This document shows positions 37,030-64,000 of a stretch of 64,000 bases of DNA, in pieces. The stretch lies in contig NW_018406841.1 of the NCBI RefSeq assembly GCF_002113885.1, forward strand, positions 1-64,000, given 5' to 3'. Origin of the DNA: Mizuhopecten yessoensis (Eukaryota). The notes below the pieces were generated by a model that searched no databases, had not been told where the DNA came from, and saw nothing but the letters and a program-made list of their open reading frames with translations. The position numbers were made by a program, and so were the translations under genes. The number at the start of each line of letters is the position of its first letter. The stretch's first letter is position 1.

Positions 37030-38534
37030 TCTGTCGACCATACACAACATGAACAGTGAAACCTCGATTAAATGCCACTCATTTCATTTGCCACCTCGTT
37101 TACTGCAAACATATTTCACATTTCCCTCAATCTATTGTCAAGCCCTTTTATAATGCCAAAACCTCTCTGGAATAATGGTGGCATTATAACGAGTTTTTGC
37201 TGTACATTAACTGACTAAATCTGTAATACACGAAAGAAGTTAGGGCTGACTAGGAATCAAAGTAACAATAATGTACAAACATGTACAAGTTTATATATAT
37301 TCTAAATACATTTTTGAAACAAATTACAATAAAGTCACAAATTGTTTGTAAAACTTTTCAGCAAACACACATTGCCAATTTAAATATTTATATTCATTCT
37401 AAAATTTCGTAATGAGTAACAAGCATTATCCATGCAATCCAATCAACAATGTTGAACTATTTTCATTGTTTCATTGTATTACTACGCTTCCTTTTACGTT
37501 ATCTGACACGCCATGTCTGTCCCTATGTAGAAATATTCGTTAAGTAACGTTATTCATAATCAATGTATGCATCATTTACAATAATTGATTCCACCTTTCG
37601 ATTAAACATTATTATTTTTACGTATTTCTTAGAAGAAAATGTTGTCCGATGTTATTTCATAAAGCAATACACTACTTACTTAAGAGATTCAAATACTTAC
37701 TATGAACATGATATATCCCCAAAACAGTCGTCTCATTTTTGTGATCTGATGAAACATTGTGCAGAAGTAATACACAAAACTTCACTTAGACCATTCATAT
37801 CCTATATATATATAAACCATGGTATAAAACAGAAACCACCATGGAATTTCGTTTGTCGGATGAAAGGATTTGGGGTGAACTTCTGGTGTACAGAATATGA
37901 ATATGTGGTATTTATGATTCCATCGCTGTATTGACGTACATCTGTCGAGTAGAGGTGTCGGCGTACAGGTTGGGAGGTTCCACCCGGGAGAGATCTAGAC
38001 TGTCATAATGGACAGGGTTTGGTGACGTCATGACGGCTTCAGTATACTCTGGCTGTTTCACGAGTGCAAGTCTTCTGCAAATATGATTGTCAAGCTTATT
38101 ACGGTTGTTGATATCGTTAAGTTTTACCTTGGTGGGCAAAAAGTCATTTACAGGCAAAATATATAGCACAAAAGTAAATAGATCAATTCTAAATGGTGCT
38201 ATGAAGGATAGCCTGTTAACGTCAAAGGAAATATGTGATAAGTAACATAATTCTGTACCATGTTACTTACTTTCTATAAAGGATAAAATGGACTACCATG
38301 GTTACAGTAATCAGTAGTGAGGTTACTACTAGAGGGACGACTACAGCACCTGGAAAATATACATATTGTTGTTATCTGTAACACAAATATTGGCTAAATT
38401 TGTTGCATAAAAAGTATACCACCTGAACTATGAGTTAGATCGACATGTTCAATCATTGTCCACAATAAGGAATCTCATTTATTTAACAAGTAACATAAAA
38501 AAAATATTTTAACTTTTATTAGCCAATTTTGTTT

Positions 38535-38665
38535 GCCCGCACGTTAGCGCACGTGGGCTTTAATGTGGAAGGAAACCTGGAAGGAGTACATGAAGAAAAC
38601 CCACGTGGTTTGGCAGGTGACCCCATATCTTTTAATGTCCGATCAGGGAATCGAACGCAGACCCC
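38535..38665 (-). mobile_element. Degenerate copy of the same SINE in gene D intron 4
   Basis: Reverse complement of the core and B-box (gggaatcgaac). The homologous copy in gene F is at 57170-57295. Confidence 0.65.
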
Positions 38666-39848
38666 CTTTTCGACGACTATCCATATTATTTATTAGAATG
38701 TCAGAAACCATACATAAAGTTAAATCCCTCGCCTAAAGCTGTTAAATTGCTCTGATCACAGACGAAAGAATTATCCATGAGTATACTTCGCAGAGAACGA
38801 TATATAAAGAGACACAATGTGTTACAACGGAGACAACAGGTTAATTGTTGTCCCTACTGTCTCTCCAAGCAAGAAGGCAAATATATATTATATTATATCT
38901 TATTATATAGTGGGAAAAGTTCACTTGAAAATATAAGTTTATTTAATAGCTAACAGTTATGAATTGAAATACATACTTAATGGATAACATTGCTGTAAAT
39001 CGTTTTGTTGAGCGCACTTTTGTCCTAATGTTGTCGATCCAGAATTAGTGCTGTTGTATGTGGTTGTCTCCCTTGACTGAGTGGTTGTCATCCTTGACTG
39101 GGTGGTTGTCTCTCTTGACTGGGTGGTTGTCTCCCTTGACGGAAGGGTTGTCTCTCCTGACTGACTGGTTGTTGTCCTAGACTGACTGGCAGTCGTTGTC
39201 TCCATTGGACTGGAAATTGTGAGACATGTTGTGGACAACGAAGACCCCGGACCTACCATTTGAAATAGAAATATGTGTAAGCCAAGTTAAATGTGTGCAA
39301 CTTAGTAAAAGATAAAATACTAGAAAGTACGTTATATAGCTTAAAGGTCACATCCGATATCAAACTTAAAGACCTAGTATCGATATTGCAACGCTCCAAA
39401 TATTAACTTGCACAAATGATGGGGATGACCTTGTGCAAGTGAATTGGATGGAAGCAAAGAGTAGTTTCTTTGTAACTAATTTTTTTTTAAATATTCAATG
39501 AAAATACCAGAACATGACAAAATTCAATAATGTGCTGTATAGATTATATCAGTTAAAGGTCATATCCGATTGAAAGCATGAAACTTGAAATTGAAATTGA
39601 AACATAAATAGAAGAATAACACAAATCACTTAACAATAACTTTCGGTAAAATGTATAACATGCAACATCTTAACACATTTCGGGAAACAGTATGACGTAC
39701 GCATTTAATAAATGTCTACCTTCTCTTTGGGATGGGGAATAGAAATTTGGGGGAAACATATCGACTGATTCCCGAATTACATATGCCTGTAAACATTTCT
39801 TAACGGTCTTGTATAAATTATTTATAATAGTGCATTGATATAGGGATC

Positions 39849-39992
39849 GAATGGATTTTTTTCATGTACACTGCGGCAATGAATAGCAGTAGCTGATCTA
39901 CATGTCCTGTGGAGCACGTCAATCCTCCTCAGAAGATATGTAGATCAGCTACTGCTATTCATTGCCGCAATGTACATGAAAAAAACCCATTC
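39849..39992. repeat. Near-perfect inverted repeat (~60-bp arms, ~25-nt spacer) in gene D intron 3
   Basis: ttcatgtacactgcggcaatgaatagcagtagctgatctacat pairs with atgtagatcagctactgctattcattgccgcaatgtacatgaa. Confidence 0.85.
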
Positions 39993-42900
39993 AAATCATA
40001 CATTTACGTTACGGTGAAGTACAATAAAAAAGTTACAACTCTTTTTGTATATTTATTATTTTTAATATTAGTATCGGACAGAAAACTATAAAAAGGAACA
40101 GCCAGAACTTCAGCCTACACACAAACTTCAAATGTTCAACTTCCGCCGATCAGCTGATATTGTTGAAACGAAAAATATATATCTTATATATATTTAAATA
40201 GTGCACCATTTATGATTTTTGTAATGTTTATAATTATTTCTCGCAACGACATTATCTCGGAGAAGGGGAGATAACTCTTCTCAGAAACGGTACTTTGCGT
40301 AGTAATATGATTTGTCATTGTGTATGAAATCAGCTGATCGACTTCACGTGAATCGTTGTATTTATAGTGTATTCATGGTCTAATGGCAGTTGTTTTCTAT
40401 AGGTAGATTCATGTACAGAACAAACATCAATAATGTAAATAAAGGTATCTGTATGAACCTGTGTTAGATATTGTAGTTAAAACCATAAAACAACTCGTTC
40501 ACAATATCAAACAAACGAGGAAGAAACAAACAAGATAGTAACGTACATGTATATCAGGCTATTGCTATTACGGGAAACGTGTTTCTGCTTTTCATTTAAA
40601 CTTTTTCAACACTGTTAATCGTTTACATAAATACGACTCACCTGCCGTTAGTGAGAGACAATATTCTGACATACTTCCACTGAGTCCATATTGCCATACA
40701 ACAGTAACTGTATCATTTGTCTGAACAGCGTTAATTATAGTGTTTCCAACAAGTAAGTGTTTAAAATAACACCTGAGAAAGCTGCTACTTGCGCTGATAT
40801 GATAATGCTGCTTCCACATCCAGACGGAGGATATAACGACTGGGCAGATCCAAAACCAACAGTAGTCATCGTTCCGCCGGAAAGTCCCGTCAGTGTCGCC
40901 ATACAGGAGCAGCTGATACTACCGCCATCTTTTCTGTACACAGACGATCCGTACGTGTCTATAACCACGTGTTCACCGATGGCATTAACATCTTCACACA
41001 TGTTCAGTACTGCAAAAAACAATATTAAATAACAATTTGTTAAAGATACCCGTGCCTCTGCCAAAAACTGTAACTATGCACTAGAAATCGACATTTTACC
41101 GGCAAGACTTTATCTATGATGAATCATTTCTAAAAGGAATATAACGACTTTACGTAAAAACAACAGAACAAATAATCAATAACGGTTTAATTTTAAAACT
41201 AAAAATTAGCGGAACTATAGACCGGGATTCGAACCATAAGACTCAACGAATATACCTCGGCCCAGTTGTACTTCAGTTATTTCCATGGAATATTTAAGTA
41301 TTATCGTAAAACGTGTTATTTACGCGGGCTGAAACTTTCACGATTTTGACCGATATTTGGAAAATTTTATTTAGACGAACTATAATTTCGCGATCTAGAC
41401 ATATGAAAGAACTACATTTTCGCGGTGTTTTAGCACAGAGACGGGACACTCGACATATAAAGTTTCAAATATACAAGGAAAGGCTTTTTGACAGCATATT
41501 GAGCACACCAAGAACGTGTATACTGTTAAAAACATCATCAACAAAACTATTAGATGGGATATAACCTATTATGTACATTTGTATATGAATCGCCACAACC
41601 ACATACTTACTATTTCATGACAACATAACGATTATGAAGTTTAAAATCGCGGCTAAATTTTACACTTATCATATTTTCTATAGATCATATTACCGCGACC
41701 ACGTTAATTATAGACCAACGAAATCGAAAATATATCATCCCCGCAGAAATATCCTAATATATGGTAACATATATTTATAAGACAGACATTCAGTGATCAA
41801 TTCTTAAAGTGTCTGCCTAGCGTTCTATATATTTGATGAACGTGACTCTAGATAAAGCATACAACCAACTATTAAGACCCTTTTAAGAGATGCAACACGA
41901 GTTACTTTCGGAGAAGAACCACAGCTATCAGCACGCCGGGGTTCTAACGCTGAAGAGAAACAAATATACCTGAGGACCTTACAATTATGTCTGATATACA
42001 CAATGGCCTAAAATCATACCTCTGGTAAGTCAGTTTTTCGTGAACTTATTTATTTATTATTAATTTGGTAAAGTCAGATATCGGTTAATGTATGTGACAG
42101 TAGAGTGAGGTATTGGTCAACTTATGTGTCGGTAAAGTTGGTATAAAACCAGGTTTTAGCACACTGTCGGTAAAACCATGTTTTACTGAAAAAGGCTAAT
42201 AGAAGAATAGTGTTTTAAACTCCTCTGTGAAGAAAAATCAATATAAGATAATATTACATTATAACGACGTCCTTATAAACAACATTTTATATTAATATAC
42301 CAACACACATACGTATAAATCAAACGGAAATGTCATATACTTTGAAACGACTTTGGAATGTCGTTCATCCCGAGTTCTACCAGTTTGATTTTGTTTGCAA
42401 AAACCTTTGAGAACGTATATTTTCGAAACCTTCTGTTGGGAAATTTAGGTAGAAATCAGTTATTACCGGTGGTTCCATCTGTAACGGCTTCAGAACAAAC
42501 AGTCCCAGCTGAATCTGTCGTAAATAAGCACACGATAAACGTTAAACAAGCAGATTTTCATTAACAAAACATTTAAGAAGCAAATAATGGATAAGAGTCA
42601 TCTCTCTTTTCATAAACTTCTTAAATTATATACCTCAAAGAGTAAACATTATAATAATAGCATTTATGTTTTTTTTTTGTATTCGTTAAAAATAGATTTT
42701 ATTTTAATTATACTAAAATTGGCTTCACAAAATTTTCATATCTTATTAAGCCATTGATTAACCATAATATATGGAAGTAATAGAGAGGGAGGAGAGATGG
42801 AAGGAAGGAAAGGAAGTAGGAAAGGGAAAAGGAGGACGGAGAGAAGAATTTTTATTAGAACCGGTGCTACAAATTACGTATTTCGAAAGAAAGAAATGGT

Positions 42901-43377
42901 AGTTGATTACAGGATGCATTTTATGATATTTCGCCAATAAATGACAAACATCTTTTAAAAACATACCAAAAAGTACTATTTTTGCATTCAATTTCACCGA
43001 AAGAGAGTTGCAAAAAGTTATCCAAAAGCTATTTATCTATTTACTCAAATAAGTTCCACTTCAGTTACAAATGCCACAAAACTCATGTTCTGGGTTACGT
43101 ATATCAGTAAAATAAATTTCACATACATTCACACCCATATATATTAATACAAATCAATGGAGAAGGATTATCTCTCTTTTCATAAACTTCTTAAATTATA
43201 TACCTCACAGAGTAAACATTATATAATAGAATTCATGTTTTTTTGTATTTCTTAAAAATAGATTTTATTTTAATTATACTAAATTGGCTTTCACAAAACT
43301 CATTTTCTGGGTTACGTATATCAGCAAAATAAATTGTACATACATTCACACCCATACAAATGTTATATATATATATA

Positions 43378-43680
43378 TAACAAATACAAAGAGTTTCTTA
43401 GCACCTCGATAGCGCTTTCACCTCTAACAAATACAAAGAGTTTCTTAGCACCTCGATAGCGCTTTCACCTCTTTAGAGGTTAATCAAGGGAACTGTTTAT
43501 AGATATAAAACAAATACAAAGGGTGTCTTAGCACTTCAATAGCGCTTTCAACTCTTTAGATGTTTATCTTTTTACCGTCACATGGAAATTTAAAACTATT
43601 TATCGCTATATATATATATAACAAATACAAAGAGTGTCTTAGCACCTCCCTATCGCTTTCACCTCTTTAGAGGTATCATA
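43378..43680 (-). repeat. Four tandem degenerate copies of the same hammerhead-like repeat within a (TA)n tract
   Basis: Reverse complement reads cctctaaagaggtgaaagcgctatcgaggtgctaagaaactc. Absent in paralogous introns (~24290, ~30545). Confidence 0.7.
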
Positions 43681-46101
43681 TTTATATATATATATATGAC
43701 CAGGCCACCTGATTCATACAGCTTTTATAACCAGGCCAGATTCTCTGTAATGGAATACACTTACCTTTAAACAAATTCACCAATGTAGACACAAATACCA
43801 AATATCACAAGGTCATTTCGTCCTCTGTTGTTAACTGTAAATTAACCAGCACAAAGTGTCAAAATTTCTTATTTCGTCATTAATATAGGATAAGACTTAG
43901 GCGACCTACTTTGAACACTAATCAAGCAAATCAATACTTCGACTATTCGACCCAGACTCTTGGTTGAAACATGGCTATATTTGTATTTAATTTATAAACT
44001 GTTTACATTTCTGCGACTAATCCTTAAGAAGGCAGTCACTTAATCATCGGGCGACTTACGTTGTAAAAGAAAATGACAATTATAGTAAATGCTCAATTCA
44101 ATAAGCATGGTCGAGGTCTTCGGTATTTTTTTATTTTTTATTCTATTTGTAATATATTTTTGCGATTTTGTGTTGATATACATTACGCATTTACAAGTTA
44201 CAGTTGGACTTTTACTTTTATCTATTCTTCTGAATAAACCTCCAAAAATGACTGATTAATATTAGTGTTTTCTATATAGCACAGGTTCATCAACACCAAG
44301 ATATACATACAACCTAGGAGACTGGTTATGTCTTGCTAACCACCCATATATCCGTAGGGACGATGCTATTTAGGTTCAGGTAATGATTTAACGCCCATTT
44401 TCTAAATTGAAAATGAAAATGAACAAGGAAGTTTAATTATGTTCGCTTCGTATAGTCTACAATTTAAATATAGCACCAATGGGTTTTTTCAATCAAAAAC
44501 CGGTTTGCCGTCTGTCAACTGTCTTTAGGTCTATTTACTGTTCATACAGTGCCTTACCTAACTGTATTCAGAGCGTACCACATAGTGACATGTTATTAGC
44601 ATGTTTACATTCAACTTAGAATTGTAAAGGCGATCGGTAAAGTCACATTATAGAAGATATATGTGCTAGTCATAGGCTAATAGATTGTATTTGTCTTCTG
44701 CATAAAAAAATGTATGTATGAAATATGCATAGGCCATTAAAGTGTATTTGTCTGTTTAGCAAAAGATTTAGTGACAATACAAATGATGTACAACTCCTTT
44801 GCAAAAAGAGTATCTTAACTTAATCAGTGATGGATGATACGCAATCAGAAATATTTCTTAAATGATATAAGAAAACAAAGACTCGGTCACGGTATGTTAC
44901 CAGAAACATTGCTTGAGGTCTACCAACATCAATATTAGATGACATAATTTTTCTACATCCCTCTTTGTTGACTCATTATCACGTAGAGGAGGTCATTTGT
45001 GATATTGACTCTGTGTTTTTATTTTTAGAAACATCAGGTCAATATTCACTTCACGACGTCACCTTAATTTTATCGCCACAATGTTTTCTGCCAAATGCGG
45101 TACCTTTCTCGATACGATTTGCTTACCGTTTGTCTTCTTTTATGATAAATCGTCAAAATTTCATATCTGATATAACAATTAAGGTAGGCGTTTTATTTTG
45201 GTGAATATGTCGTTATATTGACGTGAGATGTGATACGGATCTTGATTTCGTCTTGGTGAATATCGTTTTCTCAGTATCATATAACCACACATTTAAAGTA
45301 CATGTCAATTGTGTAGAACGTTAACACTTAACACTTTTTAATGTAGAAAAAATTTATATGTATTCTCGTTGTTATAAAATGTGCATATCTGATATACTGA
45401 AAAGAGTGACTTTATTCTTCACAATACGTATGTAAGCACATGCAATATTAAAGATATTATCTAACACAATTTACACGGCAATACAGAAGGAAATAGAAAT
45501 ATGAGCTCCAAAACCAATTACACTCCACCCATGAAATCGCATTCATAACCTGTCTTTTTATAATGACCAGTAAACAGGCAATGTAATGCAACGTAAAGGA
45601 AAGTACAATCATCTCTACATAAGAATAGGAATACCTTGTATTATATCAATAATGAAGACAGTGCTCTGTTTAGACAGGAAAAAGTAAATACCTTTTAGTA
45701 AGAACGTTTGACAGGCAAACATGAATATATTTCTATAACATTTGTAGAAGGTGTCTTTGAATAAAATAATCAATCAGTCTTGGTAAAGTTGACGTGTATG
45801 TGATCACGGAAGTAAAACCGTGAATTTTTAAAGGAATTTCCGACCTTGGACAACTACGTTGACTCAAACATAAGGCCATTGGTTGGTGTCTGTCGCGAAT
45901 GAAGTGTTTACTCAATGCCCTGTAAGTTATAACTGGTCTGACCGGATGGGTAGGTTCTAAAATAAGATAAATACATATAGCTTTTATGTTTTCGTGGAAC
46001 ATTGAGTGTACAACAACATAAGCCTAATTTTTCAGCGCTGAACAGACCAGGAAGCTTCGGAATATAGGATTGTTACTCTCTGCCCTGCTAGAAAGGACAA
46101 A

Positions 46102-49100
46102 ATGATTGTATGGAACCTGGTCTTAGTGTTGATATTGATGAGTTTATTTAAAGGTAAGTGTGTTCTTTTTTCAAGAGGGAGAGTGCTATAATTGTATATA
46201 TGGATGGTGTATATCTGACATGATGCTATCGATGACTCTCAATACCTCGGTCTTGGGAGATCAAGAGGGCCTAGTAAGTTATAAGAACTTGTGCCCAATT
46301 CCTTTGACTGTGTAATGTCAACAAAGCATGTTTAAATGAGTCAATGACACTTATATTAAAGCAGTAAATACAAAAAGGAAGGGTTACGAGATCTCGTGAA
46401 AGTTTGGCAAAACTTTCAATAGACATTTTCTGTATGAAAGGTTACAGAAAAGTGTTAACGAATACAAAAAAAAGCATATATCAATACATACTTGCATAAA
46501 CTTGTTTCATATAAGTATTTCTTACCGAATATTTAGTCAGGCTCTATGCCATCGTAATTATCCAGCAATATTTATTATTTGTATTGATTGAGATAAGTTT
46601 TTTTCAACTGTCAATTTCACTGACATACTGGTCGGTAGAAAATGGAGGGTGGGGGTTGAGGGTTGGTTGGTATCAAATATCATATCAACCTCAATCAACC
46701 TACAATATTACAAAAGCGATGTGCAATAGACAATGCCTGGAATGATAGTACTGTATTATACCTCTGTATGCATGTATGTTCACGTGCTTACTTTAGCAGG
46801 TATATTAATGAAGTTTATATATCACATGGTAGCTTTCATCCTTGCGTGTTTGTTGGAACTTTTATGCAACAAAAATAATCAATATATTCCTTCTAATTAG
46901 ATAGGAACCCATTGTTAAGATATTACAAAAAAAATGTTTTATTGTTTATAGCAGGTACAGCCGACACTGTATGTTCTCAAGCTGCTACAGATGGAACTAC
47001 CGGTAAATATAATTATATTTATTTCTGTATATACATTAAAAATACCTTATAATAAGCTAAATTTGATCAGCATTTTACAAAACAAGTTCAATTTCTATAT
47101 CAAAATTTTAAAATTCATACTAAATCAGCCAGCAATGACAAGAAACCCAATACCACAATCATCGTTATGATGTAGTTGATGAGAGCGTTTAAATAACCTC
47201 GAATATGTATTCATAAGAAAGCATGGTTATATTTACATTCAGATGTTGACATTTTGTCTTCACAGTAACGATGTGTGAAGGTGGTAATGCCGTCGGTGAT
47301 CACGTGGTTATAGATACGTACAGATCGGCTGCGTACAGACAAGATGGCGGTAGTTTCAACTGTTTCTGTACGGTGACACTGACGGGACTACCCGATGGAA
47401 CGATGACAACTGTCGGATTTGGATCTGTCCCGTCGTTATATCCTCCGTCTGGTTGTGGAAGCAGCGTTATTATAACAGCGCAACAAGCAGCTTTCCAATC
47501 TAGTCAACCAAACATTCACATGTGTGCTGTAAAAAACAATACATTTAACGCTTTTCAGACAAACGATACATTTACTGTTGTATGGAAGTCTGGAGTCAGT
47601 GGAAGTACAGCAGGATATTGTCTTTTATTCATGGCTGGTAAGTCGTATTTTATGTCAACAACTTACCAAGTTTCTGAATTTTACGTAATATGCAGAGATT
47701 TATTTACTTGCAGTACGAACAGCAGAGGATAGAATTCATATCCACGCCTCGGTGTTTCATCATGATGTACATGTTTATCTCATGCAATATAGAAATACGA
47801 CATTAGTATATGGGCATTATCAGTAACAACAGATGCATTGGTTTTGTTTGCTGTACATTTTATAGAGGGTCCCAAACGAAGGATTATTGGTTGTGATGTT
47901 TCTACGAGGCTTACAGAGTTTATTTCACCTTTTGCAAAATAGCTGATCAGAGTAAAATAAACCTGATAATTAACAGTCACAAGTTTGAGGATTGTTTTCA
48001 AATTATAACTAGAAAATCTCATCTTTCTCTCTGGAATACATTTTTTCTTGCTTCCGAAAGGGGAAAATCGCCATGAAATATGATGTCACAATAAAAGAAG
48101 ACGTCGCAAAGTAGTGTTTCTTGACATCATAAGTAGATGATTGGCCAATAAAATAACGTCTACTGTTTACCGACTACTAGTGGCTAACCAAAACAGTTAA
48201 CTAACTCCCAGGTTTACTCAATGGGTCAAAAGTGAGGAACCCTATACCGGTTGTGGGAGAAATATCAATTTATATACCACGCAGTGTTTCATCGTTTTTG
48301 TTACGTGAAGCAGATAGTGCAAATTATTCATTGTATAAACCGGAAGTTATTCGAAGTGTGGTGTCGTAAGAATAAGTACAGAGATGTTCTTATCATGACA
48401 CCCTTTTGTTGAATCTCGACAGAATTACAATTACATTGAATTATATGTTATCATTGTTGAATATGTTTCAGTGTATATTGATTGTGTATAATGATTCTCC
48501 AGCGTTGTCCATTGATTAAGTGTGTTTTTCTGCAAACGTTATAGGCCCGGGGTCATCCTTGTCAACCAAATGTAATCCTGCCGTCAACACCACAACATCA
48601 CCAACATCTCCTAGTACAGCGCCATCAACAACAACTCCTAGTACAGCGCCATCAACAGCAACTCCTAGTGCAGCGCCATCAACAACAACTCCTAGTACAG
48701 TGCCATCAACAACAACTCCTAGAACAGCGCCATCAACAACGACTCCTAGAACAACAGCACCACCAACTAGTACAACGGTGATGGCGTCATTGATGACGAC
48801 ACCTAGTACAACAACTACAACCAATCCTACAACTACCATCACGTCTACTATTGGTGGCGGAACCAATGGTGGGGGAGCCACTACGTCGTCAGAGAAGCCT
48901 ACTATGAGTCCAGAGGCTACTACAATGGCGGATAAGATTAAAAACAAGAATTTAGACAGTAATTTTATTATTTTTTCAAGTATGTGAATGTATATTCTCC
49001 TATAGTATGCTGAATTATATGTTAGACTTTTGTTATATATTAGGGTTTTTTCGTCAGAGGCATTAGCACTGTTTTGGAATTTCCTTCGCATATTTGGGAT

Positions 49101-50994
49101 ATCCTACGTATACGCGTCATTTCATTCATACAGTGCAGAGTGAATGTTGAGCTGGTTTTGGTCTGTTTATAACACAGCTTTTATAAAATTCGAATTGATC
49201 TTTAGACAGGAACGAAGGATAGTACCTTCCATATAGCTGAATAGCTACTTTAGATGAAATCGTTAAACACAATTTGTTTTGTTTCAATTTAAGGAAATTA
49301 TACATGAAATCGCGAAAACACATAAAACACGGAACGAAATACACCCAATTTATAGAATATTATAAAATAGCCTCTACTTGATTAGTGTCCTATCCAAATT
49401 AACATTAAATTGCATTATCTAGGAATTATTTTTCGTTGATCAATCTCGGCTACATGCACCTCGCGGATTTACAAACGCTATTTTTAAGCTAAACGTAATG
49501 TAGATCAGGATAATATGCTACAATGATAAATCTTCATATGTTGTACGCGATCTCATAGTAACACATTTATTTCAGACTAACAAGAGCATTCGTGAAACAC
49601 CGCCAGAGGTATCTCTTGTTTACAATCAAAGCATAACTTTCCCTTTTACTTTCATGTATTTATATATTTAAATAAAAGTAAGGTAATAGGTTTACATAAA
49701 TTAACACCCTTGATACAACCAATACAGACAAACATATTTATATTTCTATGTACAATTGTTAAATGCATAATTACACAAGAAATACCTCTGTTAATAAATT
49801 TCAAGTATGACATACTTGGTATGTAAGTACTGATAGTCATTAAGTTCTCGTTGCTGTGCATGTATCTGTCTTTGTATCATTTCAGCTACGGTCATTATCG
49901 CAATAGCTGCAGGGGGCGTGGTCTTCCTTATAATCTGCATTGTCATTGCGGTCATGTGTTCAAGGTTTGTATTTCTAATACGGTAAATAGCTATAGGTTA
50001 ACAGGAACGGAATGGTATTAGTTTGTTTAAATTGTTATTAAACAAAGTCATCACATGCCATCAATAAAAAATCACATATATGTAAATATAACATTTAATT
50101 AACAAACTGTTTCTATGTTTTAAATGATAAAAGATAATAAGTGGACTTTTCAGGTTTTTAATACATGTAGATACATATTCTCAATGTGATCAAATCATTT
50201 TGACATTATTGTCCACAATAGTGAAAGATGTTGGTTGCAGGGCCTAGGCTCAATGACTTAGGGGATAGTATGGAACAGTAATCTGTGTTTTATGTCATGT
50301 TATGTAGAATAAAATAATTTAAATTTGGAATATGCTTTGATATAAACATCATTCTTCATAACTCTTTGTGACTAGAATGTTAATATAATTAAATTTAATA
50401 ATTGAAAATTTTTGCAAATGCATTTTAAAAGATTTTGGATTTCTCAAGTCTAATTCAATCACCAATCACATCGATATGTGCATTATATTTTTCAGAACAA
50501 AAAGAAAATCAAATGAACACAGGAAAACTGGAACTGCTGTAGCCCATAATGTCTTGTATGAAGCAACAAGAGCACATTCACCGGATGCAGCAACCAATCA
50601 TGTGGTGACCCCTAGCAGCGATATATACGCACAGGTCGAAAGGCATTCGAAGGTCGAAACAACGAATTCAAAAGAGCAGTCTCATGAGCCGGAACAGGAA
50701 ATAGGTCATGTGGCGACACCTAGTGGTGATATTTATGCACAGGTCGAAAAGCATTGGAAGGTCGAAACAGCGGTTTCTAAAAAGCGGTCTCATGAGCCGG
50801 AACAGGAAATAGAACATGTGACGACACCTGGTGGTGATATGTATGCACAAATCGAAAAGGATTCGAAGGTCAAAACAACGAAATCAACCAATCAGTCCCA
50901 TGAACCAGAAGAGGAAGTAGAAATTGTGATGACACCTAGAGGTGATATTTATTCACAAGATGGGAATAAGTCAGATGCTAGTGTGTATTTCTAA
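46102..50994 (+). CDS. Gene E (complete, ~494 aa): inverted receptor paralog with C/D-type ectodomain, long mucin stalk, distinct TM and repeated DIYAQV tail. Exons 46102-46153, 46955-47002, 47266-47637, 48545-48979, 49886-49964, 50496-50994
   Basis: The spliced frame is open (1485 nt). Signal MIVWNLVLVLILMSLFK; 6-Cys exon homologous to C/D; TM TVIIAIAAGGVVFLIICIVIAVMC followed by SRTKRK. The exon-4 donor position is uncertain and exon 2 has a NAGNAG acceptor (46952/46955). Confidence 0.85.
50599..50960 (+). repeat. 108-bp (36-aa) coding tandem repeat, 3 full units plus 1 partial, in the gene E tail
   Basis: Unit starts at 50599, 50707, 50815, 50923. Confidence 0.9.
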
Positions 50995-51717
50995 TGAAAT
51001 GTTCAAATGATGAGCTACTAAGGACACAAGCAAATTTAATCATGGTGATGGTTTTAAGTCAAGCTAACGTCAGTATATAAAGAGAAATGCATCTAGACCG
51101 CCCATCAATTAGACTTGCTCAAGATTTCTAGAGCTAAAGATTGATGGATACAATACTTGTCAGAGAAGATCATTTAACATTGAAAGAGAAGTATTCAGTG
51201 CCACAATAAAAAATACTTCATTAATACATGTAATATATATTCATTTACATATTCATTTCAATAGTCCACGAATAGAAACTGTCAAATGACAAACTGTGTT
51301 AAAACATAATGTCATTTCATCATTTCGCTTTTATAAAATTATATATAAATTTCTTTTGTGTAATTCTTCTTTTTTGTGCTGTAAATTCCTTATGATTGTT
51401 TCATAAATGTTTGTACTGTTATTTTAGATTATGCTATATTAGCATGTATTCTGTCAATTTTAAGTTTTTGCCATGTTGGCATCTATGTACATTAGACTGA
51501 AACGTCTCTTAAATTAATTTATATGCTGCAAGAGCTTTATGTTTGCATGACCTTTATTCTTTCCGTGCTATTTTACTTTTTATTCGACTATCTGCGATGC
51601 ATGCTACCTTTGTGATATTTTGTTGTTTCTGTTAATCTTGATTGTTATATATAGTCGTAAGAATAGCTCTTCTGAGCTAAAGTTGCATTGTTACAAACAC
51701 GACTCTAAATAAATATT

Positions 51718-51968
51718 CTTGTATCTTGTATGTTGTATGTTGTATGTTGTATGTTGTATGTTGTATCTTGTATGTTGTATTTTGTATCTTGTATGTTGTA
51801 TGTTGTATGTTGAATGTTGTATCTTGTATGTTGTATTTTGTATCTTGTATGTTGTATCATGTATGTTGTATCTTGTATGTTGTATGTTGTATGTTGTATC
51901 TTGTATGTTGTATGTTGTATGTTGTACCTTGTATATTGTATGTTGTATCTTGTATCTTGTATTTTGTA
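51718..51968. repeat. 7-bp microsatellite (TTGTATG/TTGTATC)n
   Basis: Directly visible; it explains the spurious Cys/Tyr ORFs at 51705-52079. Confidence 0.95.
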
Positions 51969-54549
51969 TATATATATATTAAGGCCTTGTCCCAATGCAC
52001 TCATGCTTTGAACTTCTTTATAGTATTGATTTTTGTTTCTATTAGTACAATTATTAATATCTTATTATCCGTACAATAATAAGAATGATCGGACGAACTA
52101 TTTTGTGATTAGAATGAAAATATTTTGATTATCTTAAGTTAGTGCTTATGTGTTGTATTAAAATATTCTTGAACCTATATATGTACATTGTACTTCTTAG
52201 TTTTTAGTGATGAAAATATCATGTAATATGTTCATAATATTGCCTACCTGTTAATATATGTTAATGATGACCTTGTATTACACATATAGAAATGTCAAAA
52301 TGAAAATAAAAACCCTGATTTGTTTTAATGTCAAATTGTTTCTGACACCTAATACCTAATAATATTTAAAAACAATACGCATGCAAAACAAGTGAAACAT
52401 TCAGCCCTTCGTTCTTCACATCTCCTGCATTTATTACTATCATTATGTCCATTTCAATACAAGAGACGGGAAGTGGGCGACAATTTTATGAAAGTGCTAA
52501 TTTAAATTTCAAATTAATTATTTAAATATAGCGCAAATTTCGGGTATAGTTTCCTTTAAAATTATTCGTTTTGGAACGTTTATAGTGTTCTGTAACGTAT
52601 GAAAATCGATAAAGTTGGTCCAGTCTAATTTGCTTACATATTAGATTTAATTTGCCTCAAGTAATATTAAGTTCAGTTAACCAGGTAAACTGTGATATTC
52701 GCATTTACAGACTTACTAATAAATACGATTTTTTTTTTTTATATGGGATATGACACAATTGCTCTAACCCATAAACCCGTATCAGCCCGCAAAACCCGTG
52801 TCACACCCCTTTTGGAACACTTCTAATTTTTCCCATCTACCACCAACAACGTCGTTGGGAAGCCTTGTTTACCAACAGTTAAACAATAACTGATGCTGAA
52901 AAACGGCGACAAATTGGGGAGCGAGCATTGGAGTCTCTCTGCCAATAGGATTCTTGAGTTAGAATATCTGATTGAGCAACAGAACACTAAAACCATTGTG
53001 CCGTCAGAGCTGTCTGTCGTCATCGGTACGATTCACGATGTGGCGGCAGAGGGAGCAGAGCCTAAAGCTCTCATCGTTACAGCTGCAGCAGTCGACACCT
53101 GCGGCTTTGTTTCAAGCATGAGGAACAAGAATACAGTCAGAATGACCGAGTCTAACGTGAGAAAATTTAAGGCATTTCCTTTGGTAACCAATGACACGTG
53201 GTATCCAGAAGCAATTCCAAAACAGGAATTAAATAATACTTGCAAGGTTTATCGTTTTTCAATGATTCAAAAGAAAAATAGATCATAAGATAGTAGATTT
53301 ATCCGTATTTTATTAGTAAGTATGAAATAAACAGAATAAACATGCCTTTTACCATATCACACCGAGTTTCAACCGGACACCGATATCAGTCCTCGTATCA
53401 TTTTCTTGATATTCATTTTCACAAAATGCAGACTAAACTACTTGATTTTTGTGCACAATCTGAATTACGGTTGGAGTTTAAGATTAAATTAGTTTTAATA
53501 AAGCAGATTCGTTTCATGTATGGCAATCCTCGATACTCCATGGGTTACGCTCACCCCTGGAATATGTCCTGACACAATCTAAGGGTCAATGTGCGCCACC
53601 TTGTGGACGAAACATATTCAAGGGGTGCAGAGAGCGAAAGTAAAAAATGTCATATAAAAATAACCGGGGGAAAAACCTGGAATCAATGTTGGCATTGAGT
53701 CTGTAAATGAAAATAATTGTTGTTTTTTAATCTGTTTGAGTAATCACAAAAAATAGTTTCTTACAAAAAACAATCTGTTGTTTCCCTAAATAAACATATT
53801 CATCCCCGAACTCTAAACTCAGACTATGCATTGTGTATATGAGAGTCACATTTGAGTCATAACGTCATTATCCAATTAAAAAGCGACTTTTTGTCCTTTA
53901 GAAATGTATTGATAACGTTGTTGATAACGACGATCAGTGAAAAGTTGTTTGATGTGTGCTTAACTGTATTTATAATACTAGTAGACGATGTCTTATTAGT
54001 AAGTAATATTAAGCTCACGAGTTCACATTACAAAGATATGTAATATGTATCTCATCAAATTGTTCAACTTTGGGGACGACATCTAATATTTGTATTGCAC
54101 TATATCTGCATCTGCAGATGCAACTATACTATCTATATGATACACTCATTGTGATTAGTGTTTTTTTTAAATTTATAGCAAATATTACCATTTAATTTTA
54201 AAATTCACAATTTTCATTCTTGATTACGAATATACATAAAATTCCACCGGATTATTTGCTACCCCAGATGTGTGTACTATGTATCACGTATTTTGTGACA
54301 ATATCACTTTTTCTTTTTAGCTTCGAAACAACTAAGTAGCGTTTCTTGTATGTTTATATAACACTGTTCCTTGGCAAATACACGTAAAAACAATAATATA
54401 GTGTTATATTTACATTTGCGCTGCAACCCACTATATAAAGATTACCAGCAGTAATCCATTTCATTTGGGTATGAAAGCAAAAACTCTTGTGACGTAGCAC
54501 GTGGTTTACATATCTCAAATATAGCAGTTGGCAGCTTACAGCCTCACGG

Positions 54550-56410: not shown

Positions 56411-59400
56411 TTATGATTCCATCGCTGTATTGACGAACATCTGTCCAGTAGAGGTGTCGGCGTACAGGTTGGGAGGTTCCACCCGGGAGAGATCTAGACT
56501 GTCATAATGGACAGGGTTTGGTGACGTCATGACGGCTTCAGTATACTCTGGCTGTTTCACGAGTGCAAGTCTTCTGCAAATATGATTTTCAAGCTTATTC
56601 CGGTTCTTGATATCGTAATGTTTTACCTCGGTGGGTAAAAAGTCTTCAAAAGGCAATGTAAATATCAAAATGTATATAGGAATTTGATCTCAAATCAGTT
56701 CAAATACAGAACTTGATAATGAAAATGATACGAAATTATTTAATTATTTTCGTCAATGTGTAGTTAATTTCAAAACAGATACCATTGAGAAAAAGTGTCA
56801 TAAATAGATCAAGTATCCATTCTAAATGGTGCTATGAAGGATAGCCTGTTAACGTCAAAGGAAATATGTGATAAGTAACATAATTCTGTACCATGCTACT
56901 TACTTTCTATAAAGGATAACATGGACTACCACGGTTACAGTAACCAGTAGTGAGGTAACTACTAGAGGGACGACTACAGCACCTGGAAAATATACATATT
57001 GTTGTTATCTGTAACACAAATATTGGCCAAATCTGTTGTATAAAAAGAATACCACCTGAACTATGAGTTAAATCGACATGTTTAATCATTGTCTACAAAA
57101 AAATGTTTTTTGTTTATTTAAAAAGTAACATGAAAGAAGTTATTTTGACTTGTATTGGCCACTTTTGTTTGCCCGCACATTAGCGCACCAGGTTCTTAAT
57201 GTAAACGGAAACCGGAGTACAAGGAGAAAACCCACGTGTTTGGGCAGGTGACCCCATACCTTTTCACGTCTGATCAGGGAATCTAACGCGGACCCTCTTT
57301 TCGACGGCTACTGATATTATTTATTAGAATATCATAAACCATACATAATGTTATATTTCTCGCCTAAAGCTGTTAATTTTCTCGCATCACAGACGAGAGA
57401 ATTATCCAAGTATTTGTTTGCAGAGAACAATATATAAAGAGACACAATGTGTTACAACGGAAAAAGCAGATTAATATTTCCCTGCTGTATCTCCAAGAGA
57501 ATAGAAGGCATATATATATAAACAAACCTCTAATTATATAGTGTCAAAAGTCCACTTGAAAAAATANCTTGGGGCCTGATGGTTAGATGTTTAGGTGGCA
57601 GAAGTTTCAAAAGTTTTATGTGTGGCTTGAGAAATATATATAGATGTGAAATGTATAAAAGAAAAAAAAATTAAGTCTGTTTTTGACTGGGGGAGTTTAT
57701 TAAGTGTGTAATTTGTTGTAAATGTTGGTCAATTTTTGGTGTCGAATTCAATACAAAATGGCGGCCCCCATATAAAAAAAGTTCAAATAGGTAGATTTTT
57801 AAAACTTCTTTTTTTACAGGTGTGTGAAATGACATTCTTCAAAATGATGTCAGGTGAACCAGTGTGGATAACTCCATTTAACCAGGACAGTGGTAAACGT
57901 TAACACTATCGTCTATGGAAAATCATTTGGTTCCGCGGTCCCTACACCCATCTTTAAAGCCCAAAAACAAAAGATTCAAATATCCCTACCTCCCTACCGT
58001 GACGTAACCCATATCTCGATGACAGAGCCACAGAGTGATCTCCCTTCCTCTTCCTTTTATGACGCCTGCTGCCTGCTGACGGCCTGGAGCTTGCACCATA
58101 TCAAAACTTTGTTTTGTCGGTTTGGTTTGAGTGTCAACTCAATTTATTGCGCAGAGTGTGTGCTTTATATCCATATGCCCTTATTACTATAATCATTTGT
58201 TGTTGAAAATTATTTTTGTGCCTTTTACGGCCGGTTATTTTACTCGACGTGTGCCGGTGGTGTGCCACGCGGTCCGCCATTATTGTGTGAAATTTTCCGA
58301 CCTCTGTTTATTTCAGTGACGGTTGTTTGTTTCGGCAAACGTTATTTATTTTAATCGTTTTCTGATTTATATTACGGGTGAAATTCTTTCTACGTTGCGT
58401 ACCTTGTACTATCGTATTTTATTATTTTTTCTCGTGTTTATCTGCTTGTAAACTTTGTTTGACGACAGACTTTCTTTCGGGATTGTCTGTGTCTACCAGG
58501 ATTAGTGACGCGCAGCTCACTAATCCCGGCATCAATACTGGTCAAGCTAACCTTCCCGGTCAGTTACCCGGACCCGGTCCTATTAGGTCCGGCCCGGAGT
58601 TTCATTCGACCGGGAACCTTGGGGGTTCCCCCCAGGTGTTGGGTTTGCTGGACATGGGGCCGGGTTCCGGCCTCCGTTTTCCCCTGGCTTAGGGTATACG
58701 GGTGCCTGCGGGCAACCATCCTTGGGCCACCCTAACCAGCCTGCGGATGGTTATGGGTTGCGGCAGCATCCCGGCAGTTATGGGCTTAGCCCGTACATGT
58801 CCGGCTTTCCACCTGGAGGGAGTGGCGGTCCATCTTCGCCCTTTGGGCAAGATGGCCAGCCCCAGTCTCAAGCAGGCCAGTTTGGCCAGTTCTGGGGTCA
58901 CTCCCAACCCGCGGGACCTTTCCCTTATCCTCCGGGATATGGGTTTAGCCCCATGGCTTTTCAGTCATGGAATCCTTGGGGTTTGGTTTCTCCCTCACGG
59001 AGACGTGTTAGCAGTTTTGTTGAACCCCCCCCCCCCCCCCCCAAATGGTCTGCTACTTCGGGGGCCTTATCGGCCGGTCCTAAGAAGGTGTGTCGGACCT
59101 TCAGGACTTCTGCCTCTCAGGCAGACTGGTTGGTCTCTGGGTCCAAGGGTAGGGTTTTGGCTACTAAGATTAAACCTACAGCCACGGTCGTTAGGCGCAC
59201 TGCACCTAAACGCCGTTATGGGAAGCCTTCTCTCTGGCTGGCCCATTTCCTCCGCCCGAGGCTTTTGGTCTGGCTGGTGTGGAGGCTATGGCAGAGGACG
59301 ATGATGTTGTTCATTTTTCTCCTGGTTGCTCGGATATAGACACTGGTCTTTCCGAGTCGTCTGTTGACGGTCCTCAGGAGGGCTTGCCCTCTGAGGAGGA

Positions 59401-62400
59401 TGTCCAGGATGAGGGTGACCCTGAGGATGCTGAGGTTTAGGCCCAGCATGTGTTGTCCGGTATGCGGGGCCTTAGGGCCGACGTTTCCCGGATTGGGGAG
59501 GAGGTTTGCCCACCACCTTCGGCGTCATCTGTCCCCGAGTCCACCACCCTATTGGGTTCTTAGGTGGCTCCTTGGGTGTCCGCTCGGTCGGACCGCTCTC
59601 TGCCAGAAGGCATTATTGTGTCTTCATCTCTGGCCACCGCTCAGTCTCGGGTTTTAGAGAAGAATTCTTCTTCAACCCGTAGTCCTGGGTATGCTGGGTT
59701 GCAGCTCAGTGTTGGCGATTTGTCGGAGGTGCACGCCACTGACTATGCCACACATGATGGCCTGCTTGATCCTCAACCAGCTAAGCTGAAATCGAGGGAA
59801 CTTGCAGCCTGGCCCGGTAAATCGGTGGACCAAGTGGTGTTCTGTCCCAAAGAACACCACAAAATGGAGATGCGTCTCTCCATCCAGATGCTGTCTTATA
59901 TAGACTACCTGACGGTTTGTCTATATAGGGTATCCGACTTGCCTGAGGGTCGGCCAACATCCAGGACAGAGTGGCCTCTGCCCTGAACGGGGCATTGAGA
60001 GCGCTGGCAGCTTTACAGGTGTCATCGCTCGTCAATGTCTTGTTGGCTAGGCGGTTTTCAGTTTTGAAAAAACGTCCAGTCGATGAGCCTTACCGCTCCA
60101 GATTGTTGACTGCCCCCTTCTCAGGGTCCACTCTTTTGGAAGGGGCCTTCCTTCTGTTCAGAAGGATTTGAAGGAGGACTCGGTCGCCTCTGCACTTCTG
60201 GTGAAGAGGATTCAGGCTGAGAAGGCCAGTACCTCGCAGGGGTCAGCGCCTCCTAAGAAGAAGGCTAAACCTTCGGCTTCGCAGTCCTCTGCGCAGCCCA
60301 AGTATAAGCCTCCCTTCAAGGGCAACAAATGGAAGGGTAAGAAGGGTAAGAACCCTCCTGGGGGTAAGAAGAAGGGTTCCTGACTCTCTTCTTCCCTCCT
60401 TGGTCGTGTCAGACGACGAGTTTGGCCGGGAGGACTGCAGTCCTCTCGGCTCAAGCTTAGGTCCTTCTCCCGCAGGATTAGACTTCGGGTCAGCAGACGG
60501 TTCTCTTGCCTGGCAAGGTCTCGATCTGCCTCGACCAGATCTTCCTGTGGGGGGTCGTATTTCCGCTTTCCTTCCAGAGTGGAAGGAAATTACGAAGATG
60601 CATGGGCCTTGTCTGTGGTCAAGGAGGGGTTAGGGGTTAGGCATCCGCTAGTGCGGTATCCGCGTCAGAGCCAATCTTTTTTCCTCCACCGGGGGATCCG
60701 GAAAAGGCTTTGGCTTTCCAGGAGAAAGTAAGGACCATGCTTACCAAGGGCGCGGTCGAGGAGGTTCCTATGTCGGTATGCACTCCCGGGTTCTACTCCA
60801 GAATGTTTCTGGTTCGGAAGAAGTCCGGGTCGTGGCGTCCCATCATAGATCTAAGTGCCTTCAACAAGCACGTAGATTCTCCTCACTTCAAGATGGAGAC
60901 TCCTCGGGGTATTATCGCCTCCGTGAGAGAGGGAATGTGGGCGACTTCAGTAGATCTAAAGGACGCCTACTGCCACTTCCCCATCAAAAACTCGGCACGG
61001 AAGTACCTCCGTTTTACTTGCAACGGAAAGGTCTTCCATTTCCGGGCCATGCCGTTCGGGCTCACAACTGCACCTTTGGTTTTCACTAAGCTGCTGCAGG
61101 TGGTCGTGGGATTCCTGCACTCTCGAGGAATAGATGTTCACATCTATTTCGACGACTCCCTCATGCTCCACCTAGTGAGAGAGTCTCCGGTTCAGGTCAC
61201 CCGGTTGGTTCTGAAACTCTTACTCAAGGTCGGCTTCATTCCTTCCAGAGAAAAGTCGGAGGTTTCCCCATCTCAGGATTTTGTTTTCCTGGGGAACCGT
61301 TTCAATACGGTTCAGGGCATCGCCCTTCCACCGATGGAGAAGTTCGAGAAGGCAAGGGCTTTTGCTCTGACCTGCATCGGCCGGTCTCAAGTCCAGGTAC
61401 GTTGGTTTCTCAGTTTTCTCAACGCCCTGGCCGATGTGGTCCCCTTAGGGAGACTTCACATCAGGCCTCTCCAGATGTTTCTCCTTGTCAACTGGGTCCC
61501 TTCTTCAAGGGATTGGGAAGCCTGGGTTCCTCTGAACAAGTCGGTCAAGAAGTTCGCACGCTGGTGGACTCATCAGGACAATGTGCTCCGAGGGGTTCCT
61601 TTGTCCAAGCCGGTTCCCACTATGACCCTGTACACGGAAATGCAGTTGACAATTTGCGTCAAGCATCTACCAGGCAGGTTGAATGTTCTGGCGGATACTC
61701 TTTCCAGACGCCGCCAGCCGGTGTTGACAGAGTGGCAACTGAATCCCTCGATTTTCGAGGGAATTTATCAGGTGTGTGACAGGCCTCACATAGACCTGTT
61801 CGCCACTTCACTGAACAATCAGTTGCCAACGTTTGTCTCTCCGGTTCCAGATCCAAGGGCTTGGGCCGTGGACGCTCTGTCTCTGGATTGGGAGGGAATG
61901 CATGCATATGCATTCCCGCCCTTCAACCTGGTGGGCAGGGTGCTGCAGAAGTTTCGGGGGCATCAGTGTTCACTCCTCCTGATAGCGCCCCTGTTGCCGA
62001 GGCAGCCTTGGTTTCCGGAGCTTTTGTCACTTCTGGTGGAAGAGCCCCTGGCTCTTCCTTCCAGAGCGAACCTCCTTCGCCAGCCTCGGTCCAGGCAATG
62101 CACTCTCGTCCGGAGATCCTCCACCGTCACGCTTGGAAGCTATCTCAGGAGGCCTCGCTCAGGCGGGCTTTTCTAGGGACGTGTCAGATCGCATCGCTCG
62201 ATCAATTAGGTCTTCCTCATCTGCCGTCTACCAGTCCCGATGGAAGATATACTGTGATTGGTGTGTCGGCAGGAAGGTTGATCCATCAAGGCTACTGTCC
62301 AGGTGATTGCGGACTTCCTTCTTTGGCTGTTTAGGGACCGCTGTCTTGCCCCTGGCACTATCGCTGGTTATCGCACGGCCATTGCTAGTGTTCATTCTGT

Positions 62401-63857: not shown

Positions 63858-64000
63858 CTACCATTTGAAATAGAAATATGTGTTAGCAAGCCTTTATAAA
63901 AGGTAAAAGACTAGGAAGTACGTTATGTAGCTTAAAGGTCTGGTTTCGATATTGCAACACTCCAAATATAAACTTTCGCAAATGATGGGGATGACCTTGT

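Follow-up and report, generated by a model that had tools for sequence, protein, structure and literature searches.

Among the defining features of vertebrate innate immunity are receptors that come in activating and inhibitory pairs; to our knowledge, the known ones carry Ig-like or C-type lectin-like ectodomains. CUB-type ectodomains are found on single-pass proteins such as CDCP1/CD318 and DCBLD1/2, whose tails bear multiple or repeated tyrosine motifs at which SH2 adaptors dock. As defined for KIR, LILR, PILR, SIRP, Siglec-5/14, and Siglec-11/16, the inhibitory member of a pair has an ITIM (immunoreceptor tyrosine-based inhibitory motif), and the activating member combines a short tail with a transmembrane (TM) lysine or arginine that pairs with an adaptor carrying an ITAM, an immunoreceptor tyrosine-based activation motif (PMC3533184). 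For pairs of the CEACAM1/CEACAM3 type, the parts of the two sources used here describe an activating partner with its own ITAM-like motif, a likeness between the ligand-binding ectodomains, and joint evolution of activating and inhibitory partners (PMC2832619, PMC5112662). Here, we analyzed gene E of the Yesso scallop, Mizuhopecten yessoensis, which lies in the first 64,000 nucleotides of contig C3514 of a 988-Mb assembly (C3514:1-64000, hereafter the window; coordinates without a prefix refer to it), a stretch of AT-rich animal DNA with approximately 34% G+C. The original prediction, made from this stretch, read E and its divergent neighbor D as paired receptors, with the same ectodomain type on two unrelated signaling modules. 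A literature search for these genes or for a scallop CUB/ITIM family found no paper, and the receptor family is uncharacterized so far. Judging from the sequences, we consider it reasonably probable (about 0.6) that gene E is the long-tail member of a family with a two-tail, paired layout, in which the ectodomains co-evolve and the two tail classes would give different outputs.

Two tail classes on one family of ectodomains

The window holds five copies of the ectodomain exon, exon 3. Four are on the minus strand (1314-973, 13618-13268, 21857-21504, and 41001-40640) and belong to genes A, B, C, and D, and the fifth (47271-47639) belongs to gene E, the sole family gene on the plus strand and thus the only inverted member, as had been noticed; exon 3 of a further gene, F, lies beyond the window. 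Genes A to F and a second long-tail gene, E2, are all located within 76 kb of C3514, and a second cluster is found on contig C875. Exons were searched individually, and database proteins of E, E2, and F were used where a spliced protein was needed. As whole-protein stand-ins we took P0017 for E, P0016 for E2, P0011 for F, P0010 for the remnant of D, and P0003/P0012 for C; P0022, matched by domain, tail, and contig rather than exon by exon, is probably gene B. The search with E exon 3 against 1.84 billion representative proteins returned 8 hits, and the named animal hits were all from Pectinidae. The hits outside this family were one unnamed entry and one bacterial protein (P0006; 1767 aa, E value of 1.7e-7, seven short stretches), the latter probably compositional. 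In the present data, the receptors were therefore found in scallops only. Their members are predicted to be type I membrane glycoproteins, in which a signal peptide is followed by a single CUB-like domain, a mucin-like stalk, a single TM helix, and a tail with tyrosine motifs. The product of gene C is predicted to be soluble.

Two classes of tail were recognized. The short class has 54 aa, in which VHYDSL is followed, after 10 residues, by Yxx(T/M/I) and then by YVN(T/M). This TM segment and tail are kept in Mizuhopecten, Pecten, Argopecten, and Ylistrum, with the second tyrosine exactly 10 residues past the near-invariant VHYDSL. The long class, of approximately 87 to 200 aa, has an AAGG-type TM segment, HN(V/S)LYE (in five of six aligned tails, the exception being P0013 of Argopecten irradians), and two to four copies of GDxYA(Q/V)(V/I). 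Its members are E, E2, P0025, and a second C875 gene in Mizuhopecten, P0026 in Pecten, P0004 and P0027 in Ylistrum, and P0013 in Argopecten. A B-type ectodomain and a long tail are joined within one annotated protein in three species (P0025 in M. yessoensis, P0026 in Pecten maximus, and P0027 in Ylistrum balloti). As the original prediction held, the TM segment and tail of E are unlike those of B, D, and F: no copy was found elsewhere in the window, and the comparison with the F/D tail gave a BLASTP E value of 8.9, which means no similarity. Calling the two modules unrelated may nevertheless be too strong; because the TM exon has 79 nt and the same phases in both D and E, an old kinship is possible, and the modules may be very old relatives.

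Next, the histories of ectodomain and tail were compared, the check by separate phylogenies having been proposed beforehand. The ectodomain tree resolved three well-supported clades, namely, the A-type, the B-type, and a core of C, D, E, and F, each of which contains both tail classes, and tail class changes at least five times on it. With domains of 118 to 128 residues and few taxa, the approximately unbiased (AU) test rejected grouping by tail class at every level: when the long-tail ectodomains of the whole family were forced together (delta lnL of 359, p-AU of 4.7e-5), within the core clade alone (p-AU of 0.0046), and within the B-type clade alone (p-AU of 4.6e-6). The B-type partners were the most telling. 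In M. yessoensis, gene B (short tail, P0022) and P0025 (long tail, on C875) share 88% domain identity; in P. maximus, the identity between P0024 (short-class TM) and P0026 (long tail) is 84%, and the two form a sister pair at 100/99. B-type genes with the same tail share only 53 to 61% in the domain across genera, yet 61 to 73% in the long tail. Since partners are so much closer than same-tail genes of other genera, the sequences indicate that a species keeps the ectodomains of partners similar while the domain changes fast from one species to another. Such a pattern suggests that exons underwent gene conversion or were repeatedly exchanged, as in the paired receptors of vertebrates. Conservation of the ectodomain across tails is thus strong for the B-type (84 to 88%) and moderate for E, which has 73% amino acid identity to D, 63 to 66% to F, and 66 to 68% to E2.

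Regarding the fold of the ectodomain, Pfam assigned 0 families to any domain of seven proteins, and no hit at an E value of ≤1, including CUB (PF00431), covered the exon 3 domain. Sub-threshold hits to TMEM51, TMEM154, Endomucin, and EphA2_TM were rejected, as they reflect TM and mucin composition. The AlphaFold2 model, computed from an 11-sequence alignment, was a beta-sandwich (predicted local distance difference test score of 80, predicted template modeling score of 0.79). CUB domains led an exhaustive structural comparison, with Kremen at a Z score of 8.5, MASP-1/3 at 7.6, and spermadhesin at 7.3, and with further CUB matches to C1s, neuropilin, TSG-6, PCPE-1, and cubilin. These superpositions reached Z scores of 6.4 to 8.5 and a root mean square deviation of approximately 3 A over 96 to 113 residues, 7 to 8 being a typical best Z score for models without a clear match. 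Foldseek against the PDB gave weak jelly-roll hits only (template modeling score of up to 0.37 by model and 0.47 by target). Overall, the model suggests that the ectodomain is probably a highly divergent CUB-like beta-sandwich with eight cysteines rather than an Ig domain. The automatic UniRef name of gene C, "Ig-like domain-containing," finds no support in the CUB-resembling model, and the Ser/Thr-rich stalk apparently gave rise to the artifactual labels "endochitinase A-like" (E2) and "cell wall integrity and stress response component 4-like."

Gene E, its neighbor D, and their duplication

Gene E is assembled from six exons on the plus strand. The coding part of exon 1 (46102 to 46153) encodes the signal peptide MIVWNLVLVLILMSLFK, and exon 2 (46952 to 47002) encodes AGTADTVCSQAATDGTT and supplies the first ectodomain cysteine. 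Exon 3 (47266 to 47637) corresponds to the modeled CUB-like domain, with six of the eight ectodomain cysteines, and exon 4 (48545 to 48958) opens with GPGSSLSTKC and continues as a Ser/Thr/Pro mucin-like stalk. The 79-nt exon 5 (49886 to 49964) encodes the long-class TM segment TVIIAIAAGGVVFLIICIVIAVMCS, with an uncharged core and homologs in P0004, P0013, and P0025 to P0027. Exon 6 (50496 to 50994, stop at 50992 to 50994) encodes the 166-aa long-class tail, which has homologs in Ylistrum and Argopecten and contains HNVLYEA and four 36-aa cassettes with GD(I/M)YAQ(V/I), the fourth cassette having GDIYSQD. The full product has 488 aa and corresponds to the database protein KP79_PYT06804 (P0017), an exact match to the window whose annotation begins at an internal methionine, 12 residues in.

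Transcription was assessed with contigs of small sequencing runs from three studies, the GT..AG joints of which demonstrate their RNA origin. Joints 46153/46952 and 47002/47266 were present in spliced contigs of run X2, joints 47637/48545 and 49964/50496 in runs X1, X2, and X8 (three studies), and joint 48958/49886 in X1 and X2 (two studies). Exon 4 is therefore spliced to 49886-49964 and onward to 50496-50994, as had been predicted, and because these RNA-derived contigs supply its joints, the gene model is confirmed, and E is a genuine, transcribed member of the family. RNA depth of the locus begins within the bin 45994-46187, and one raw transcriptome sequencing run had a few reads over exons 4 and 6. 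The runs with spliced E also contained contigs reaching into F and C exon 3 sequence. Intron 4 (48959 to 49885) is also retained, as seen in contigs spanning 48929-49889 (X1, depth of 13.5) and 48929-49915 (X2); the other introns of E were spanned by 0 pieces in X1 or X2. The retained form predicts a soluble product, a secreted ectodomain plus stalk, ending in ...LDSNFIIFSSM before the stop.

Further sequences in the RNA runs and around the gene were recorded. Loose ends of X2 behind 46153 and of X8 before 47271 joined an E-like exon 1 or exon 3 to an unplaced exon 2, for which 0 matches were found in C3514:1-104000; these exon 2 sequences come from alleles or from additional paralogs that are expressed in those samples. 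Contig C82560 carries one more core-type exon 3. A piece of approximately 45 bp in intron 1 (46264-46309, plus strand) had a depth of up to 130 in three runs, with unrelated flanks, and is probably a short repeat common to transcripts from elsewhere. Just 3' of E, at 51717-51969, there is a tandem repeat with a period of approximately 56 bp and copies 89 to 93% identical.

Gene D, the partner named in the original prediction, lies on the minus strand. The ATGs of D (43816) and E (46102) are 2286 bp apart, which agrees with the 2.3 kb first stated, and the region between these divergent genes (43817 to 46101) is a candidate shared promoter. The claim that exons 1 to 3 and the start of exon 4 of E are of the C/D type also held, with 75%, 82%, and 81% (81.4%) nucleotide identity to D in exons 1, 2, and 3, respectively, and with GPGSSLSTxC opening exon 4 in both. 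In D, exon 4 (38977 to 39252) encodes GPGSSLSTTC and the stalk, exon 5 (38271 to 38349, 79 nt) the short-class TM segment, and exon 6 (37912 to 38074) the 54-aa short-class tail, in which a motif scan identified VHYDSL (an ITIM), NLYADT, and YVNT; exon 2 spans 42467 to 42514. Exon 1 (43765 to 43816) carries TGA at codon 4 (43807-43805), where F (MALWYLVF...) has TGG. In exon 3 (40642 to 41009), 7 bp present in C, E, F, and E2 are deleted near 40751; this deletion, evident from the alignment, the open reading frame (ORF) list, and the invariant cysteine columns, shifts the frame into a stop at 40737-40735 and takes out a family-invariant cysteine. The NCBI annotation covers a 156-aa remnant only (P0010, LOC110452968), starting inside exon 4. 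By its sequence, D is thus a pseudogene with two disabling lesions, and because these are independent, an assembly error is an unlikely source. No allelic copy of D exon 3 was found in the assembly, and a contig search for the database proteins P0010 and P0018 found no contig encoding them.

An intact counterpart of the pair lies just past the window. Gene F, on the minus strand, has its short-class tail exon at 56411 to 56573 (protein P0011) and exon 4 at 63580 to 63858, and it runs past the window, with exon 3 at C3514:65592-65206 and the ATG at C3514:68092. Head-to-head with F, on the plus strand, is E2 (P0016; C3514:70452-75614), and the two ATGs are 2360 bp apart. Regions 37.5 to 51.7 kb (D/E) and 56.0 to 76.4 kb (F/E2) are colinear over approximately 15 to 20 kb, and their intergenic regions (the latter at C3514:68093-70451) are 91.5% identical. 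These observations indicate that the D/E unit was duplicated as a whole, giving the intact pair F/E2, and that D then died, with F, E, and E2 remaining intact. Divergence between the copies is mosaic. E and E2 share 97% nucleotide identity in the tail exon (dS of 0.019), differ at 1 of 75 nt in the TM exon, and share 93% in intron 5 and 94% in the 3' flank; they share 71 to 78% in introns 1 to 4 and 82.8% in exon 3 (dS of 0.20, dN/dS of 0.95). Likewise, only 2 of 162 nt in the tail exon distinguish D from F, against 78.6% identity in exon 3. Therefore, the ectodomain block and the signaling block appear to have had different histories. Every pair among C, D, E, F, and E2 has 76 to 83% identity in exon 3, with dN/dS of 0.6 to 1.2, and a special homogenization of the E ectodomain with its head-to-head partner was ruled out (E-D, 81.4%; E-E2, 82.8%).

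Some features of the surrounding genes were also noted. The Grb2-type YVNT site is lost in intact F, which has FVNT, and kept in the pseudogene D. Within intron 4 of F, a GC-rich block at approximately 57570-63550 (48 to 54% G+C versus approximately 34% elsewhere) contains an ORF at 60710-62176 (plus strand) of 488 aa with a reverse-transcriptase-like YFDD motif; we read this block, absent from the duplicated copy, gene D, as a retroelement insertion. On C875:484000-510000, two long-tail genes lie on the minus strand, the B-type P0025, with 88% identity to gene B of the window, and an A-type gene with 78% identity to P0019; both tails finish with a pair of ITIMs, a stretch rich in proline, and ...DTGV or ...DTSV. 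In Ylistrum balloti and Argopecten irradians, an amino acid transporter gene (Aa_trans) lies downstream of the core-type long-tail gene, on the same strand, and this synteny could serve as an anchor for the orthology of E2 or E.

Tail motifs and the direction of signaling

As described above, the two tail classes differ in their tyrosine motifs. VHYDSL, a canonical ITIM, was present in 8 scanned short tails, and the gene upstream of the Ylistrum long-tail gene had ENYDSL instead. The tyrosine of this ITIM also opens a dyad, YDSLx10Yxx(I/M/T), which among short tails fits the ITAM consensus, Yxx(L/I) x6-12 Yxx(L/I), only in P. maximus and A. irradians (YDSLx10YEEI); the short tails of M. yessoensis have YADT or YEEM at the second position. 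In the motif scan, the tails of E and E2 had no canonical ITIM, immunoreceptor tyrosine-based switch motif (ITSM), or ITAM, and their repeats read GD(I/M)YAQ(V/I), with aspartate at position -2. No other long tail scanned fitted the ITAM consensus either, and B-type long tails of three genera carry two canonical C-terminal ITIMs, L(M/V)YAE(V/I/L) and VIYSEV. The hydrophobic core of the TM segment is free of charged residues in both classes, and the combination of a short tail with a TM lysine or arginine was not found in the family, in which no adaptor was sought. By motif, either tail class could be inhibitory, and their opposition is something we infer.

In the reading that we prefer, partner genes would bind the same or related ligands, and Src-type phosphorylation of the tails would be followed by the docking of different SH2 proteins and hence by different outputs. 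With a weak preference, drawn from the motifs, we would take the long class to be the more likely inhibitory or regulatory one, of the SHP or Csk type, and the short class to be ITAM-like or Grb2-coupled.

Several observations weigh against this reading. The trees were built from short domains and few taxa, and the CUB assignment rests on middling Z scores (up to 8.5) and an 11-sequence alignment, with no sequence-profile hit. With 63 to 73% amino acid identity between E and D, F, or E2, a shared ligand is uncertain for the core type, and in exon 3, E resembles its partner D no more closely than it resembles E2. Moreover, a head-to-head pair with similar ectodomains is not universal, because the gene upstream of the Ylistrum long-tail gene is an A-type short-tail gene on the opposite strand and the upstream neighbor in Argopecten is not a family member; these were the two genera compared, the P. 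maximus contig being too short. Finally, E itself lacks a canonical ITIM, ITSM, or ITAM and a charged TM residue, and ITIM-type motifs occur in both tail classes somewhere in the family, so that the classes may not oppose each other.

The last point leads to the strongest of the alternatives, in which both tails would be scaffolds phosphorylated on tyrosine that signal with one sign, or with graded strength, through ITIM/SHP in both or through Src/Csk docking, and the genes would form a diversified receptor set. The YAQV and YAQI of E match positions +1 to +3 of vertebrate ITIMs, and together with the conserved VHYDSL of the short tail, the two canonical ITIMs of the B-type long tails, and the lack of an ITAM consensus in any long tail and of a charged residue in any TM segment, this match favors such a reading. 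However, both classes persist together in four genera and three subtypes, and the ectodomains of partners are kept similar, which redundant tails would hardly explain; the short tails of P. maximus and A. irradians also fit the ITAM consensus. On balance, we judge tails of the same sign to be unlikely.

A different role for the long tail, as mainly a trafficking module whose repeated YxxPhi motifs drive endocytosis or phagocytosis, would make E-type proteins uptake or scavenger receptors and leave signaling to the short-tail proteins. GDIYAQV, GDIYAQV, and GDMYAQI all fit YxxPhi, the long tail is acidic and repetitive, and a CUB-like fold is found in endocytic receptors such as cubilin. Nevertheless, YxxPhi is a very loose motif, and the conserved GD before the tyrosine and the alanine at +1 suggest a more specific reader, which makes this role very improbable. 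Equally improbable is a nonimmune function (adhesion, gamete or larval recognition, shell or byssus biology) with homogenization as a by-product of clustering: reproductive proteins, too, are typically surface proteins that evolve fast and are restricted to a lineage, and dN/dS near 1 also fits relaxed constraint, but regulated tyrosine signaling accords with the conserved ITIM and ITAM-like motifs and with the two-tail design seen across genera, and simple tandem proximity does not explain 88% identity between B-type partners on different contigs (C3514 and C875).

Overall, the sequences support the paired-receptor reading as a matter of architecture and evolution, more for the family than for the D/E pair, because D is dead. 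From the original prediction, the layout itself stands, with a similar ectodomain on two tail modules, duplicated as a unit and present in all three subtypes; what falls away is D as the working partner. The ectodomain of E shares only 63 to 73% amino acid identity with those of D and F, against 84 to 88% in the B-type pairs, and E lacks the marks of a classical activating partner, having neither the short tail with a TM lysine or arginine nor an ITAM.

The scallop family among known receptor systems

A stronger proposal is that a true paired-receptor system arose independently in scallops, on a CUB-like ectodomain, with ITAM-like short and ITIM-type long partners matched by gene conversion and diversifying fast between species; we put this forward tentatively, as possible but somewhat doubtful. 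If true, it would be a case of convergent evolution of paired-receptor logic in a mollusc, on a different fold, and a lophotrochozoan counterpart of the KIR/LILR/CEACAM-type receptors of immunity or allorecognition, including decoys in soluble form and partners that have died. The pairs would then offer a tractable way into the question of how the cells of bivalves adjust their responses to pathogens or non-self, in an aquaculture group with heavy disease losses, and the partners B/P0025 and F/E/E2 and their motifs are now defined well enough for direct testing.

Compared with CDCP1/CD318 and DCBLD1/2, the scallop proteins share a probable CUB-type ectodomain, a single membrane pass, and a multi-tyrosine tail. 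They differ in having no detectable homology (no Pfam CUB hit), one domain on a mucin stalk, other motifs, and the paired two-tail organization.

Like the vertebrate paired receptors, the scallop family has a conserved ectodomain on different tails, small clusters, ITIM-bearing members, and putative within-species co-evolution of partners, as well as members predicted to be soluble (gene C and E with intron 4 retained, as with LILRA3) and pseudogenized partners. Unlike them, it has a CUB-like rather than an Ig or C-type lectin ectodomain and a bivalve host, no scallop partner combines a motif-less short tail with a TM lysine or arginine, and D and F carry a canonical ITIM on the short tail.

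The CEACAM1/CEACAM3 pairs, as far as the cited parts of those sources describe them, resemble the scallop partners in that both members have their own cytoplasmic tyrosine motifs, of the ITIM/ITSM versus the ITAM-like kind, and similar, co-evolving ectodomains. The scallop domain is of another type, with no sequence relationship, its ITAM-like dyad overlaps an ITIM, and its long tail is a repeated GDxYAxV cassette. The likeness of scallop partners within a species is the same pattern that is described, in the parts of the sources used here, for vertebrate pairs such as CEACAM and Siglec-11/16.

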